Origin: Anthoceros angustus
Taxonomy: Eukaryota > Plantae > Anthocerotophyta
Assembly (NCBI GenBank): GCA_010909165.1
Contig: VJWM01000221.1
Location: 124,001-188,000 of the forward strand
DNA: 64,000 bases
Reading direction: 5' to 3'
Under the pieces are notes generated by a model. The model worked only from the letters and a program-made list of their open reading frames with translations, had not been told where the DNA came from and did not search any database. The translations under genes and the position numbers were made by a program. Shown here piece after piece: positions 4,980 through 14,666 of the stretch; the first letter of the stretch is position 1; every line of letters begins with the position of its first letter.

Positions 4980-7900
4980 TCAATGTGGCCACACTTTCGA
5001 GCCTCTGATTCCTCGCTTCCATTCCCCTAAACTCCGGAAATCATCTTTGTCGATCCAGTTGAACTCCATCTGGGTTGTAGAAAATCAGCCAAGCCTGAAT
5101 TTAGCTGAAACCCACTTACAACAAACATTGTAGAGAAGGAGGGGATTATAAATGATGACAGTGGTGTACCTGGCCGACAATCACAGTGTCACCTTCCTGA
5201 ACTCCCTGTTCTCTGAGTGCTTTGCTCACCCCGCTAGCATTCAGAACATGCTGAAATCTTCTCACCGCTTCAAAGTACCTGAAATGCTTTCATTCTCAAT
5301 GAAGGTGACTGGTGGAAGAAGATTCCAGGCGAATGGAGGTAAACAAGTCTAAAGTTTGAGAACATACTCCCAATTCGTCATTTGGGTGAACCGTTTTAGT
5401 CCCGCTCCATCAATATACCATGTGCGCGTGTGTTTGTCACATGTTATCTTGAAGTCCTCTATAGGGGCACTCCGCTTCTGTTTCACAATCTCACCAACTG
5501 AAGGGCCTTTGACTTCCACATCTGATACAGTTTTCACAAGGCCACAAGGAAATCAAAACCGATGCTTGCAGGAAAAGGAACTTCTGCTTTCACATGTAGT
5601 GAAATGAACTTGCCTGCATCTGCCTCCACAGGCTGTGTACTCTGCTTCAGGAGCTCATAAGCTGCATCAACAACCTCCTTGGTGCCTTGCTGGGTCGCTG
5701 CGCTCATGCACAAGGGCTCAACTCCCTTGGTTCTCAGAAACCTCTGAAAATTCTCCCATCGGTCGGCGGCCTCTGGGACATCCATTTTGTTATAAGCCAC
5801 CACAAAAGGCTTGTGCTGAAGTTCGGGGTTGAAAAGCTGCAGCTCCAAGCGAACTGCTTCATACTCGTGCTCTGCTTGCTGACTCATCCCATCTACAACA
5901 TGAATCTACAAACATTTCCAAACACATCCGCTGTTACCGCAAAGTGACTTGCAAACACGCATCGACGGCACGAAGGTGCACACACTAAGAAATCGCGACC
6001 AAAATGAAGATAGGGGCAACCAAAGAGAAGCAGCAGATATGGAAAAGCACAGGGAAGGATCATAATAAGGCTTACAAGGACCCGACACCTTTCCGTGTGC
6101 CGCAAAAATTCATGGCCAAGTCCATATCCAGTATGTGCTCCCTCAAGCAAGCCAGGTAGATCAGCCACCACCATAGATGCATCAAACCCCAAAGCCACCA
6201 CCCCCAAATTTGGTAAAAGAGTAGTGAAGGGGTAGTTAGCAATCTCTGGTCGAGCTGCACTGATGGAACTCAACAGCGTGCTTTTTCCAGCGTTTGGCAC
6301 CCCTATGATACCAGCGTCTGCCACAAGCTTTAGCTCCAGTTCTACCCACCTGAAAGTTGACAGTCCAGAGCTACAGGTGAGCCTCAACAACCAGAGAAAA
6401 GAGCTCCACGGTTTTTCAGGCCCCATAACCAACATCTAGGTGACAATACAGCAGGCAGCAGGTATCTTAAGACAGACATTTCTGCTCCTTCTTCGCCATT
6501 TTCAGCAATTTGTGGAGCTTTGTTGCGACCTGACTTGAAGGCCCCATTTCCCCGCCCACCTCGCCCTCCTGGCAAAAGCAACTCTCGCTGTCCAGGCCTT
6601 GACAGGTCCAAAAGAATATCCCCATTGCCTTCGGAATCTTTGACAAGGGTTCCTACAGGCACCTTCACAATGCAATGCTCACCCGTAGCCCCTGTCTTGC
6701 CCTTCCCCTGCCCATGGCTACCTCTTGTGGCTCTGAAATGTACAGTTCTTCTGAACGGCAAAAGCGAATTTATAGCAGGGTCTGCTTCAATGTACACGTC
6801 ACCTCCATCTCCACCATTACCCCCCGAAGGACCTCCAAACGGCACAAACTTCTCCCTTCTAAACGCTACAACTCCATCACCTCCATCTCCAGCTTTCGCA
6901 TAGATTTTGGCTCTGTCGAAACATCTCATTACAGCTGGAATACCTCTCTTATCCATATCTAGGTCGTCCACATCTTCATCCTCTTCATCCTCACGAGGTG
7001 CTGCAGTTATTCGTCGCTTCTCTGGAAGGAAGCTCATGGCTTCTGTGGTCAGGTGTTCTGAGATGTCTTCCGAACTGCCATCATCCTCAGAATCCTCCAG
7101 AACAAGTCGAGAAACTGTTTTATTAGTGGGGGCAACGGGGCTGGTGTGCCTCTCCTTACCCCTCCTCCTCACAATCCCTTGATCCTTGTCCCACTTGTAC
7201 GCCTCGAGAAATTTTGAGGGAGTAGGCTCCGTTGGAATTTCCAGACTATCTTGGTCTTCCTCGCCATTGTCAGATAGAGATGCTGACGGTCCAGTGCCAC
7301 TGCTACTCCCTTGACTTTTTTCTTTTGCTATTTGTTCCTCCATCTTGCCAACAAGCTCCTTGAGCCTGGCTAACTCTTTCTCCATTTCAGTAACGTTCTC
7401 TTTACCGCTCGCCCCCTGACCCTGCAACCTCGGAGTTGATCAAGCTGATGCCACCATAACTGAGTAAGAAACTTTACTGCACCAGGTGTGACACTTACCG
7501 GGGATTGCTTAGAAGGAGAAGCAGCAGCTGAAGACGCACGTCGTTCTTTCTCTGCTCGTTCCCTTTCTAGCTCGGCAATCTCCTCCTCCGCTTCCAACAA
7601 TAGAGCAGCTTCTTCTTCAGCAGTCATGGGTCCTAAATCCCCCTCCCACACTTCCACAAGCTCCAGATCCTCATCGCCCTCGGCCAGCCTCCTGTCCCAT
7701 TCCTCGTCATCTATTTCCACCCACTCTTCCTTCTCATCTTCACCATCCACACCTTCCTCCGCACCTTCCTCTTCACCATCCACTCCAGCATCCCCTGCAT
7801 CCTGGTCCCGGAGAAGCACGTGCTCACGAGCCCGTTCCTCGGACACTCTCACACCCCCAGAGCCTGAATCTGTTTCAGGGTCAGGACGCTTCGAACTTTT

Positions 7901-8308
7901 CCATCCACCTGGATTCCTAGCATACCATGATGCCAACGGCAAATTCTCCTCTTCCCTGGGCTGCAAGGCAGTGACTGATGCTCCAGCAGACCATAAATCC
8001 AGTACCACTGGCTCACTTTCCTTCTTCACTGAAGGCACATTATCCTTCCTCCTCTTGTCTAGAACGGCCTGCTTTCCTGTGCCGTCGACTTTTTTGGAAC
8101 CACCTTTCCCAGCACAAGTCACAGATACATGTCGTCTTGTTCCACATGAATTCTTGCCCATGAAATGTGCGTTCCACCGATCCAGGTTCAGAGCTGAACC
8201 AATCCCAGAGGACCTGCACAAAGGTGTGAGTGCCTGGCCTCCATGGCTGGAGCCGTGGACTCCTTGAGGGGCCACACCCGAGGCTGCAAATGGCAGCAAC
8301 TTAGCCAT
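4980..8308 (-). CDS. OBGC: Chloroplast Obg-family GTPase (ObgC/CPSAR1), 7 exons
   Basis: Obg fold [19 protein letters not shown]...GGRGGRGN, G1 [23 protein letters not shown], and C-terminal [12 protein letters not shown]...GVQEGDTV...WPH* (TGA at 4982-4980). N-terminal transit peptide and acidic region. Confidence 0.96.
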
Positions 8309-9697: not shown

Positions 9698-9966
9698 AGC
9701 AGCCACAGCTGCGAGAATGTTCTAGTGTATTTGCTTTAGAAGCATCGAGCTACAGAGCAGGTTGCGTATGTACAGGCGGACAAGGCTAGCTGACGTTCAG
9801 TAGTTTTAGTCACCTTCCGTTCCAACCTAACGGCGGCCGTTATGTCGTCCTCGACCCCGGCATGTGCGCACCCTGCGGTTGCATGGCAGGGCATCGCGAG
9901 GATCGCATCAGAACAAACCACCTGCCCTGCTGGTGGAAGGAGCACCGCCCAGACACCTCGGACAAG

Positions 9967-12900
9967 ATGGCCGGCCGGATCATTCCTGGTTTGATGTTTC
10001 TCGCGTTGGCAGTGCGCCATGCGATTTGTAATGAAATCATGAGGCAGTATTTGCTCACCAGCAGTGTGGTCGGCGATTGTGCGACCGCTTCGAACGCACT
10101 GGATGGCCTGAGTTGCACTGAGTTCCTTTGGGCGACGTTTGCGGTTCCTTCCAAGAATGTGAGAGGGATTGCTTCCTGATCCTGGGTTTCTGAAGAGGAT
10201 GCTTTTGAGCGCAGTGGAATTCTTGTCTTTTGTGCAGACCCAACAAGGAACCTCGTATGCGATAACGTTGGACGAAACGTTTGTGCTCAGCACTGGGCAG
10301 ACAGAGAAATTGAAGTACCCCATCACCATCTCCTTTACGCTTGGGCCAACTGCCTTCACTCTGCCTGCAACTTTCGTGGCTGTGAGTAGCTCTGCTATGA
10401 CGGATGGACGGATGGATAAGGCATGGCATGGCATCCCATCCTCCTCACTCCAGTTGGAACGTGAACTAGGAACATAATGCACAGCCCTACGAAGAGTCCA
10501 TCGAACGATCTCCTTGCGTTGCTTACACTGGTTCCGGCACGTTGGCCACTTGTGGATGGTAATGCTGGCTGGTGCCTCAGGCTGGGCCATATTTCATGCA
10601 AACTCACGCCTTGCTGCAGGTGGCCCTAATCTGAAGATCTGCTTGCAGGGCTACGGATGCTGCCGGAAATAACATACCCAACAGTGAGGTCAGCACACAA
10701 GAACCGTTTGCGAATCACACCTGATTGTGGCGCCTTGCAAAATTTACCTCAGCCTGATGCTCTGCCTGTGCTGTAACAATGCAGGGTTTCTGCTGCTCCA
10801 ACTGTGCTACAAGCTCAACCAGCCGGGGCTCGCAATGCACTGACTCAGGTGACTATGACATGTGCACTGCTTCTTAGATATTGAGCTGCTTAACCATGAG
10901 CAAGTTTCTAAGGTCGATGACACTTGCTTAGTCATGTACAAATGAACAGACTCTTCTCCAGTAGCATATTGTCTAAGGATGAGCGCAAACTGGTGAGTGA
11001 GTGCTATTGCTTGGCTTGGAATCTGTCCATCCAGGTTTCGTTTGCCCTCATATTGGGCTTTTGGGTTACATTCAGGTTTCAAACTTACTCTCTGGGCGGC
11101 TACTCGGCGTCCTTGGAGTTTGCCACCGTCGGTGTCAGACGTTACATCAGTGGGACCAAGGTGCTGTGGATGCCACTTCTGCTACATTACAAGGAGCATA
11201 GTTGAGGCTGCTCGTGCTTCATTCTCTGTAATCTGCGTATGCTTGCCGGTTGTGCAGCCCAGCTCCGAGAATTTAACAATTTCAGGAGATACTCCTACAG
11301 CCGTCGACAGTGAGGGCCAGTGGAAGATTTTGCTTACTAAAATCACTTCCCCCACCTTGGATGCCCTCCATTCATCGTATCTGTCCATTCCCCTGTCCCC
11401 GGTGAGATTTACATTGTTCCTTGCCGCTGTTCCTTGCCTTGCTGCAATGGCAGTACAAGAAATGCTGTGATATGGACGTCTGACGCGCTGTTGTCGAAAA
11501 TCAGCCTCCTTCTATGGTGCAAGATATTTCTGGGTGGCTGGCCTTGGACTCTTCGTTGTACGGAAGCAACGACTCCTGCAACTTGGTGGGTTCGTCGTAC
11601 GATGGGTATGTCGCCCATCCGAATAAGTGCTCAGCACCTCTGGGTGACTGCACAAACAACCAACTAAACAGCTATGTCCAGGTAACTGTTTGATGCTGTG
11701 GGCTCGTCCGACCTTGGCAGTTCCAAAACGCTAACTGCAGTCTCCGTCCTTCCAAATGTCTTGAGCAGAAAAACGCTGCTGCACAACGTCATGGTTCTCC
11801 GGGACCATACTCGGCAACCACAACCTATGGATCCTTCCACGTAAGTTTCAGAAGACGTCGTGACTGTTGACAGCAAAGAAGGGCCTGTTCTGAAGGTCAT
11901 CTGATCACCTGTCAGGCGAATATGACGGATGACCGTAGCACACTTTACTCCATCACGGTGCCGCAAAGTGCTCTAGTGCTCTCCTATACCACCTTTGCCG
12001 TAGCCATTGTTGCTGACAATATTGAATATATCCCAACAGTGTAGACACCCTCCCTTGGCTTTCCTTCCTTCTATTTGAACCACCTTGATTGGATGGCTGA
12101 CTCTTCTACGTTCTTGTCACATGATCAGGTACAAAGGATCGATCGTGGATCTCAAAGCTCTCGGATACAATTCCAGTGACATTTCCACCAGAATTGTGAC
12201 CGTGGACGTCAAGAGCACAGGAACAACTGCTACCAATTACACTCTCACCGTAAGTAGCCCACGGGAAGGCAAGGACGTTGGTGGTGTTCAGGGCCCAAGT
12301 GCTTTTGGCAGTGGCTGATTCACTGTTGTGTGCATATTTTCATAGGCCAGCTCCAGTGCACAAGTGGAATGGCTTCTTCTCAGGTGATTCAACCTCACCT
12401 TCACCGTCACCGTCACCATCACCTCACCCCTCGTCACCTTCCACGACACGGAAGTATTGCAGAGACGTGATGCCATAAATGCTCATTCTTGTCACCCGGT
12501 TGTGAGCCCTCATCTCAGTCTGTCACCCTAATGAATCTGCTGCCGAACAACCCGAAAGGTGTCAACTTCACACTCCATTTCGACACCAACGTGGCCCCGG
12601 CCTTCAACTGCTCAGGTGTGCATCCTGTTCTTGTCGAATGCCTAGCTCCGTCATAGAACACAGATCCTCATGGTTTTACTGTGTATCCAGCATATCTGTT
12701 TGACATCCAAAGCCACCTGCAAGACTGGCAGACTGTGACGGCGTATCCGGATGGAGTGACTAAGTCGGTAAGCTCTCGAGCCACCCAGGCAAGGGTCCCT
12801 TCCCTGCACACACATCCACATGAGTACTAACCCTGGCTTGCTGAGCAGATCAGTGAGAAATTCCCCCCGCTACAGATCTCCTCCCTCCCGAGATGGATGC

Positions 12901-13941
12901 AGTATCCTGTCCAGTTCCTGGCCATCCAGCTCAAAAACTGCAGGCATGAGCTCACATTCCCCCGCCCTGTGCTGGCATTTGCAATTTTTCAATTTCATTT
13001 TCACTCCTCGTGTATCCGGTTTTCTGACCGGATGGCAGGAACTGCACTTCAGCGGAGGTTGCGCGAACTCCACCGCCGTCAACTGCCAGACTTTCCACAC
13101 ATGTTGGTCGGCCGTGATGACCATGGTGGGAGCACTGGCGTTGGCGATCGTCAGTAAGTTCATCGTTCGCAACCAGGATCCAGGCCTCCAGAACGTGTAG
13201 TCGTGAATCTGATTGCGTTCCGTTCCCGCAGCAATTCTGACGCTGGTGGCGCTGATTCGGCACGGGAGGCTAGGGTTCTTCGTGTCACAGTGCGCGCTGT
13301 TGATGTGCTTGCCCTGCTGGCTGGGGTTCAAGCACAGTGGCAAGCTCGCGGATCTCCTCCGGCTCAAAGCTCTACGGGGTCGCGTCGCTCCAGCAGCTCC
13401 AGCTGCCAAGGTCTGGAAGCCATTGCTGGGCCCTGGCAGGGAGGCGGCAGCGGAGGACGACGAGGAAGACGGCATGAGGTCGGACGACGAGCAGGATCAC
13501 AGGGCCGGGCCGGGCGATGAAGGGGACCAGGAAGAAGCGCCCGGGACCGGGCTGGGACACCGGGCCTCGCTGCTGGCGCCGCCCCCGCCGGGAACTCCCT
13601 TGCCGGGGAAGGGGAAAAAGCCCTTCATCCCGCCGCGACCAGTGGTCCCCGACCAGCCTCCCCTGCTTAAATCTCCCACCCCCTTGCCGAAGAAGGCATT
13701 AGACACGCCCCGACCAGTGGTCTCCGACCGCCCTCCTACGGGGACTCCCTGGCTGAAGAGATTGAAGAAGGCCTTCAAGCGGCCCCCACCAGTAGTCCCC
13801 GACCTCCCCCACCCGGTCGCCGGCAGGGCTCTGGGTCCGGTGGGCCCGGGCACCTTGCCTATGCCTGCTGGCCGGGGACCAAGAATGGTGCGCTTCGAGG
13901 CGCCTTTCAATGGACGCAACCTCTCTCTGGGCAACTCCTGA
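9967..13941 (+). CDS. HAP2: HAP2/GCS1-family class II fusion protein (fusexin), divergent, 18 exons, about 800 aa
   Basis: Hand-spliced exons, all phase-consistent: 9967-10158, 10238-10381, 10470-10558, 10649-10688, 10785-10848, 10950(or 10962)-10992, 11076-11160, 11258-11401, 11505-11681, 11769-11840, 11916-12040, 12129-12249, 12351-12383, 12519-12615, 12691-12767, 12849-12943, 13053-13153, 13232-13941. Product has a signal peptide; LLTSSVVGDC..LSC..FAVPS; NAQPYEE; TCGW..SEGFCCSNC..RG..C..AYCLR..W; YLSIP; W...SCNLVG.SY...PNKC..P.GDC..NQL; ADNIEY; an Ig-like domain III; C..GC..NC..TCW; and a TM segment followed by LIRHG. The exon 16 donor is GC and less certain. Confidence 0.88.
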
Positions 13942-14666
13942 AGGGCGCCCAGCAGGCCATCGCCCTTGAGACTGCTTCAGCGAGTATTTGGCGAACCCAG
14001 AATTGAGATTTCAAGACACCCATGAGCGGAAATTACAAACAAAAGCGCAACCGAAGAGAAATATTTATCACTTGGCTAAGCTGCCACGAGTCTCAGCATT
14101 GTAATATCAAGGATTGTCTACGTGCAATTTGGACTCCTCACAACCTCAATTACACCATGCACAACCTGCAGTAGGTTTCCGTTGGAGGCTACACGTCGTG
14201 CAACTAGGACAGTAGAGAAAGGAACAGAACGGTAGACTAAGGGAGTAGGAAACTTCAAGTAGCTGCTGTAAAGCAGGTGACACTCATTTACACCTGTGCG
14301 CCTTGGCCACCTGCATCCACAGAGCTTGCAGTACAGGCACCGGTGTTAGAGGAAGCGCAGCTGGGTCTCTGTTATTCTCAGCAAATAAAACACACTTTAG
14401 ACGAGGGCAAACAAAAAAAGGAGCTATATTCCCCGCTGCTTCAATTGTACAGACAAAAACTGGCCTCCTCAACATACTTATATAATGAATGGGAAATAAG
14501 GTCAAATCGGAAAACCATTGTATTATCCACATCATACGGTAGCTCGGTCCATAGACCACTCCACAAATCAGCTCTCCATAGGCGCTCCAGCCAAAAGAGC
14601 CATTTCTGGAAGTAGGTATTGCGATGGTACGAGTATCAAAGTAGGCGAATTCACAGACGAGGTGAA

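Follow-up and report, generated by a model that had tools for sequence, protein, structure and literature searches.

Contig VJWM01000221.1 of the hornwort Anthoceros angustus was analyzed over a window of 64,000 nucleotides (nt), the whole stretch of DNA considered here, and carries on its plus strand, at positions 9967–13941, a HAP2/GCS1 gene. It is an intact and transcribed land plant member of this family of class II fusion proteins, and its product is a type I membrane protein roughly 800 amino acids long. Three-frame translation of positions 9800–14100 gives short stop-free blocks whose frame changes from one to the next and whose edges carry GT and AG; joined, these blocks form an 18-exon reading frame that opens with an ATG at 9967 and closes with a stop codon at 13939–13941 (Table 1). 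The preferred product has 802 residues (797–813 given two undecided splice choices), the 17 introns measure 75–135 nt each, and the frame is intact over 2.4 kb and 18 exons with usable splice sites.

Exon 9 alone matches the Pfam family PF10699 (HAP2-GCS1) with 43.4 bits and an E-value of 2.4e-11 (cutoff 27.4 bits), and it weakly matches three solved HAP2 ectodomains (PDB 7s0k and the Arabidopsis structures 5ow3 and 5ow4). Nine other stop-free pieces gave no Pfam match, these pieces being too short or diluted by translated intron. The complete spliced product was compared with a local hidden Markov model (HMM) built from 22 fetched HAP2 proteins, and matched it in one stretch (HMM positions 8–591, protein residues 13–598) with 273 bits and an E-value of 2e-85; 200 shuffled versions of the product reached at most 3.8 bits. 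The assignment to the HAP2/GCS1 family, already made in the first-pass annotation from the letters of the sequence, is thereby secure.

The alignment is collinear from the signal peptide through domains I–III to the stem cysteines and the membrane span, and a three-domain class II fusion-protein fold is predicted from this homology. Cysteine is kept at all 18 columns where no fewer than 12 of 15 non-embryophyte HAP2 sequences have it, the sole change in the cysteine pattern being CC-x-C to CC-x-x-C. The conserved Arg (in TSRG) and Glu (in PYEE), the pair that braces the domain II tip and fusion loops, both stand in conserved columns. The product has type I topology, with a hydrophobic N-terminus, a large ectodomain, one membrane span seen as a single strong hydropathy peak at residues 553–575, and a cytoplasmic tail of 227 residues with a net charge of +12. 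This tail begins with a juxtamembrane Cys cluster, followed by an acidic block and then a basic, Pro-rich part. Within residues 701–760, after the acidic block, three copies of P-x-P-V-V-x-D-x-P-x lie 25 residues apart, separated by Lys/Arg-rich stretches.

Transcript evidence comes from one RNA run (X2), whose sample also gave DNA run X1. RNA contigs from this run carry GT..AG joints that are exact to the base at introns 4, 5, 7, 8, 9, 14, 15, and 17; thus, the gene is transcribed and spliced. The first-pass annotation had proposed a cryptic gene of 18 exons that splice in frame into a product of approximately 800 residues, and the 802-residue model with its eight RNA-exact junctions agrees with that proposal. 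The same annotation had read an antisense open reading frame (ORF) as a shadow of the gene. As a candidate gene, this 284-residue minus-strand ORF was discarded: Pfam returned no match, its stretch at 10174–10447 lacks any RNA depth, and it is accounted for as a shadow of coding-strand composition.

The first model, restricted to GT–AG introns, encoded 813 residues, and three of its boundaries were revised in the light of homologous proteins and of the poplar gene. The exon 12 donor at 12253 and the exon 13 acceptor at 12346 were dropped upon comparison with poplar, being replaced by 12249, which has a GTAAGT donor, and 12351. For intron 16, a GC–AG form (12944–13052) is preferred because it restores the C-x3-C spacing of the family and lies at the same column and in the same phase as the corresponding intron of poplar, Closterium, and Klebsormidium; the GT–AG form (12969–13038), which adds 13 residues, is kept as an alternative. 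An in-frame exon 3 acceptor at 10485, which would remove five residues, is likewise kept only as an alternative to 10470, the acceptor preferred by homology and by the length of the poplar exon.

Table 1. Exons of the HAP2/GCS1 gene and other features of the window
Feature	Position	Strand	Length (nt)	Remarks
Exon 1	9967..10158	+	192	Start codon, signal peptide, first two conserved cysteines; an RNA contig stops at donor 10158
Exon 2	10238..10381	+	144	Length as in poplar; without RNA cover
Exon 3	10470..10558	+	89	Length as in poplar; ends in T-C-G-(W); without RNA cover
Exon 4	10649..10688	+	40	Length as in poplar; ends in ...IPNSE; junction 10688/10785 RNA-confirmed
Exon 5	10785..10848	+		GFCCSNC, conserved Arg, conserved Cys, start of polar loop; both junctions RNA-confirmed
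Exon 6	10950..10992	+		Remainder of loop (DSSPV), A-Y-C-L-R-M (AHCLR in other HAP2); acceptor RNA-confirmed
Exon 7	11076..11160	+		Donor RNA-confirmed
Exon 8	11258..11401	+		Both junctions RNA-confirmed
Exon 9	11505..11681	+		Core of Pfam HAP2-GCS1 signature; both junctions RNA-confirmed
Exon 10	11769..11840	+		Acceptor RNA-confirmed; intron 10 only unspliced in RNA
Exon 11	11916..12040	+		...IVADNIEYI..., end of domain II; placed by homology
Exon 12	12129..12249	+		Start of domain III, ...TGTTATNYTLT; GTAAGT donor
Exon 13	12351..12383	+	33	Length as in poplar; acceptor revised from 12346
Exon 14	12519..12615	+		Donor RNA-confirmed; homology
Exon 15	12691..12767	+		Both junctions RNA-confirmed
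Exon 16	12849..12943	+		Stem; GC donor at 12944 preferred; acceptor RNA-confirmed; no spliced intron 16 in RNA
Exon 17	13053..13153	+	101	Length as in poplar; stem cysteines, first half of membrane span; junction 13153/13232 RNA-confirmed
Exon 18	13232..13941	+		Second half of membrane span, Cys cluster, acidic block, basic Pro-rich tail, stop; RNA contigs over 13232–13985
Antisense ORF	9736..10590	-		284 residues, over exons 1–3; rejected as a gene
Obg-type GTPase gene	5534..8308	-		Upstream neighbor, head to head with the HAP2 gene

Fourteen introns lie under RNA cover, of which eight are spliced and six (introns 6, 10–13, and 16) are seen only in unspliced form, with single contigs running through intron 6 (10947–11160), introns 10–13 (11766–12615), and intron 16 (12848–13153). 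Readthrough of any of these six leads to a stop codon. RNA depth is zero over exons 2 and 3, and intron bins carry depth throughout. The six introns are taken as real because the flanking exons, which align with HAP2, change frame across them, because their positions match those in poplar, and because of the indels of a relative described below. We read them as probably belonging to a partly processed transcript, perhaps from a tissue without sperm production. Their neighbors are precisely spliced, and they may constitute a fixed set of retained (detained) introns.

A second organism, represented by run X3, is approximately 92% identical over the whole locus. Twelve of its 33 insertions and deletions are listed, and all 12 fall inside introns of the model, among them changes whose length is not divisible by three (8, 1, and 10 nt in introns 6, 11, and 13, respectively). 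A complete list of substitutions is available for exon 1 only, which differs at 30 nt and at 16 of 64 residues, while its frame and both cysteines are kept; the ratio of nonsynonymous to synonymous substitution rates (dN/dS) is 0.45. The gene is therefore conserved in a related species, with constraint on exon 1.

The descent of the gene is recorded in its introns. Exons were mapped by exact spliced translation in the HAP2 genes of poplar (protein P0028, locus L005), Klebsormidium (P0145, L006), and Closterium (P0003, L007), and the introns were projected onto one alignment. The poplar gene also has 18 exons, and all 17 hornwort introns correspond to its introns in order and phase: 10 stand at the same alignment column, and the remaining seven, all in stretches rich in gaps, are offset by 1–23 columns (by no more than 6 in five cases). 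Identical lengths in the two genes are found for exons 2, 3, 4, 13, and 17 (144, 89, 40, 33, and 101 nt). Column and phase are identical for intron 1 in poplar, Closterium, and Klebsormidium, and for intron 12 in all four genes; intron 6 and intron 11 (phase 2) agree in both respects with poplar and Closterium. RNA shows introns 11 and 12 only in unspliced form. Introns 3 and 15, the former in phase 2 and located within the TCG|W codon run, are common to the hornwort and poplar genes and absent from both Closterium and Klebsormidium. The hornwort gene thus has the embryophyte type of HAP2 exon–intron structure and descends from an embryophyte HAP2 gene. Given the exon-by-exon match with poplar, the architecture of the HAP2 gene has remained stable since land plants first arose.

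The motifs of the protein point in another direction at first sight. T-C-G-W spans the junction of exons 3 and 4, and N-S-E-G-F-C-C lies at the opening of exon 5. Among the fetched sequences, PTCGW...SQGFCC is found in Closterium, Spirogloea, Klebsormidium, and Apatococcus, whereas poplar, Nelumbo, and Nicotiana have ICERL...(S/T)QP(L/I)CCPC. The first-pass annotation had likened the hornwort motifs to Chlamydomonas and protist HAP2 more than to angiosperm HAP2; this comparison with fetched sequences bears out a likeness to streptophyte-algal and chlorophyte HAP2. The simplest reading is that the alga-type motifs are retained ancestral states that have changed in angiosperms. Between CC.C and the conserved Arg lie 6 residues here, as against 2–3 in angiosperms and 13–18 in most non-angiosperm sequences (minimum 9).

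Beyond these motifs, the protein is strongly diverged. It shares 21–27% identity with every fetched homolog, at 63–120 bits, whereas the fetched streptophyte-algal, chlorophyte, angiosperm, and metagenome HAP2 proteins mostly score 100–300 bits against one another. Of 76 columns whose residue is shared by 12 or more of 15 non-embryophyte HAP2 sequences, the hornwort protein keeps 48 and angiosperms 55; it is more diverged than angiosperm HAP2, though not by another order. In comparison with angiosperm HAP2 (Arabidopsis, PDB 5ow3, and poplar), the likeness extends from the exon structure to the short segment between CC.C and Arg, the conserved cysteines, the single membrane span, and the net-basic tail. 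However, identity is only 21–23%, and residues kept in angiosperm HAP2, for example in L-GD, AF, and CL-NQL, have been lost. The highest pairwise scores are to streptophyte algae (Spirogloea P0010, Closterium P0003 and P0008, and Klebsormidium P0145), at up to 120 bits and 26–27% identity, and these share TCGW, SQGFCC-like, and AHCLR-like motifs with the hornwort protein. Yet the algal proteins are 39–47% identical among themselves and only about 26% identical to the hornwort protein.

Searches for closer sequences returned few. An exhaustive search of representative sequences with exon 9 gave six matches. Repeat proteins accounted for two spurious ones, and the best of the genuine matches were 34–43% identical; the library searched yielded no ortholog or annotated copy of this gene, and nothing similar appeared outside near relatives. 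Two fragments from short metagenome contigs (P0004 and P0005) are 43–45% identical on exon 9. No bryophyte, lycophyte, fern, or gymnosperm HAP2 was found in a word search with the Closterium query (20 matches, mostly algal), among the best 120 listed matches of a word search with the Jatropha query, which included eudicots, or with a profile of algal HAP2 and the window exons (11 matches, adding Klebsormidium).

A maximum-likelihood tree was built from 28 rows, of which seven came from angiosperms and none from bryophytes, ferns, or gymnosperms. The hornwort end branch is 3.9 changes per column long (median 0.52), an abnormal length of the kind that the first-pass annotation had anticipated for a separate lineage. 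In the free tree, the hornwort protein stands beside Zygnematophyceae with support of 30/52. A tree forced to unite it with the seven angiosperm rows has a log likelihood better by 0.28, with a p-value of 0.53 in the approximately unbiased (AU) test. Since the forced angiosperm clade costs nothing, this tree cannot place the hornwort protein.

A distinctive feature of the protein lies at the predicted tip of domain II. The loop between a conserved Cys and A(H/Y)CLR reads TDSDSSPV, eight residues with one Val, two Asp, and no aromatic residue. In the 132 other HAP2 sequences fetched, the same loop has 8–17 residues and 2–7 bulky hydrophobics, always with an F, L, or W pair; among all 133, a loop with no aromatic and a single bulky hydrophobic residue is unique to the hornwort. 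The variable segment before the loop, ATSSTS, is also polar, and no nonpolar membrane-insertion element is evident in the sequence of either segment. In streptophyte algae, the loop has 15 residues with six bulky hydrophobics and 13–18 residues separate CC.C from Arg, as against eight, one, and six in the hornwort. Angiosperms have GNFFDKLMKGKANT in the fusion-helix loop, whereas the hornwort TDSDSSPV has no amphipathic helix. In Arabidopsis HAP2, the loop before AHCLR carries an amphipathic helix whose nonpolar face is needed for liposome insertion and fertilization, and such a helix was predicted in all plant and algal HAP2 proteins examined in that study (Fedry 2018, PMC6089408). By sequence, the hornwort protein appears to be a class II fusogen scaffold with no evident route into a target membrane.

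On balance, and with only modest confidence in the account as a whole, we favor descent from an embryophyte HAP2 gene followed by rapid evolution of an extra copy that is no longer a stand-alone fusogen. Most likely, the gene would be a fast-evolving second copy beside a putative other HAP2 locus in the genome. Its product would most probably reside in the sperm membrane, and would still fold and trimerize like HAP2. Insertion into the egg membrane in the manner of other plant and algal HAP2 proteins would presumably not be possible, because only eight polar or acidic residues remain of the loop in which those proteins bear their amphipathic or hydrophobic fusion element. In that case, the protein could serve as an altered partner or a regulator in gamete fusion, or could need a second protein in order to insert into the membrane. 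A role apart from canonical gamete fusion, which the first-pass annotation had also raised, is at most hinted at by the lack of hydrophobic residues in this loop. A more specific version, which we regard as speculative and rather doubtful, is that of a second HAP2 that retains the full class II scaffold, has lost its insertion element, and assists, restrains, or lends specificity to the canonical sperm fusogen without being fusogenic itself, with production of this second copy perhaps gated by removal of introns 6, 10–13, and 16 in the male germ line only.

Several observations weigh against the account of a fast-evolving extra copy. In run X2, six introns appear only unspliced, exons 2 and 3 are uncovered, and a full-length mRNA is not seen. 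Support for the placement in the tree is only 30/52, and angiosperm HAP2 itself sits on a stem of 2.45; the sequences compared include no bryophyte, lycophyte, or fern HAP2, and the branch may be no longer than is usual for hornworts. Additionally, HAP2 insertion motifs vary widely, Trypanosoma using three small loops (PMC6089408), and another surface could therefore take over.

The principal alternative, which we consider unlikely and yet take seriously, is that this is the ordinary, working hornwort HAP2 ortholog, a fast-evolving sperm fusogen that inserts through another part of the domain II tip. Gamete-surface proteins often evolve fast. The embryophyte-type exon structure, the retention of all conserved cysteines and of the Arg and Glu, the near-angiosperm count of core residues (48 of 76 against 55), the failure of the AU test to reject a clade with angiosperm HAP2, and the conservation of the gene in a related species all fit such an ortholog, as does the known diversification of insertion motifs. 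It is less easily reconciled with the lack, in ATSSTS and TDSDSSPV, of any aromatic or bulky nonpolar residue except one Val, unlike the 132 other sequences, or with pairwise scores about half those among other green-lineage HAP2 proteins.

A decaying copy, an unprocessed pseudogene in the making whose transcripts remain mostly unspliced and are destroyed, is improbable. It would explain why 6 of the 14 RNA-covered introns are seen only unspliced, each adding an in-frame stop, why RNA depth is low with introns covered too, why the fusion loop has lost its hydrophobics, and why dN/dS in exon 1 is fairly high. However, a frame intact over 2.4 kb and 18 exons with usable splice sites, the retention of 18 of 18 cysteines, a dN/dS below 1, and eight precisely spliced introns speak against decay, as does the relative, which keeps the exon 1 frame and has all 12 listed of its 33 indels in introns.

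Least probable of all is a reading along the lines of the first-pass annotation, with its ancient or second HAP2 lineage: a gene of algal or protist type whose separation from canonical plant HAP2 predates land plants. Its TCGW and GFCC motifs, the free-tree position beside Zygnematophyceae rather than angiosperms, and the very long branch fit this reading, but the motifs are shared ancestral states, the placement is weakly supported and joining angiosperms costs no likelihood, the exon 9 search gave nothing similar outside near relatives, the segment between CC.C and Arg is nearer in length to that of angiosperms, and 17 of 17 introns correspond to poplar, two of them missing from both algae, so that an ancient lineage is not supported.

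Duplicated HAP2 genes are known elsewhere. Dictyostelium has two HAP2-GCS1 homologs (PMC4910948), and HAP2 paralogs are discussed for Leishmania and Plasmodium (PMC10630298). If the fast-evolving hornwort gene is indeed a second copy, the likeness would be that one genome contains a pair of HAP2-family genes, of which one has strongly diverged; the protist duplicates are independent events in other kingdoms. In the literature searched, neither a hornwort HAP2 nor a land-plant HAP2 that is a second copy or lacks the loop was described.

In plants and many protists, HAP2 is to our knowledge the sole gamete fusogen identified so far, and we know of little that charts its control outside Chlamydomonas and Arabidopsis. 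A hornwort HAP2 with all structural cysteines and without the hydrophobic element would offer a natural test of what that element does. Should the second copy be real, it would point to a division of labor inside the HAP2 family in a land plant, one that is directly testable because Anthoceros is transformable. Should this gene instead be the only hornwort HAP2, a plant HAP2 would be able to fuse membranes without the helix.

Further features were noted at or near these loci. Upstream, the minus-strand neighbor is an Obg-type GTPase gene (Pfam GTP1_OBG, E-value 1.6e-52; MMR_HSR1, E-value 1.4e-18). An RNA contig of 4480 nt, with a depth of 45 as against 4–25 over the rest of the HAP2 gene, ends exactly at the exon 1 donor and reaches 4222 nt upstream of position 9900, towards or over the Obg gene; it may represent either an upstream plus-strand transcript that shares exon 1 or an unstranded merge. 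In Closterium sp. NIES-64, the exon encoding the PF10699 core of HAP2 lies inside a tandem array of units of about 175 nt (L007, positions 6600–7200), with at least three or four copies at 85–100% identity. The annotated protein P0003 includes two of these copies as a 32-residue duplication that is absent from the Naga37s-1 protein P0008, and which may reflect alternative exons, a real duplication, or an assembly artifact.

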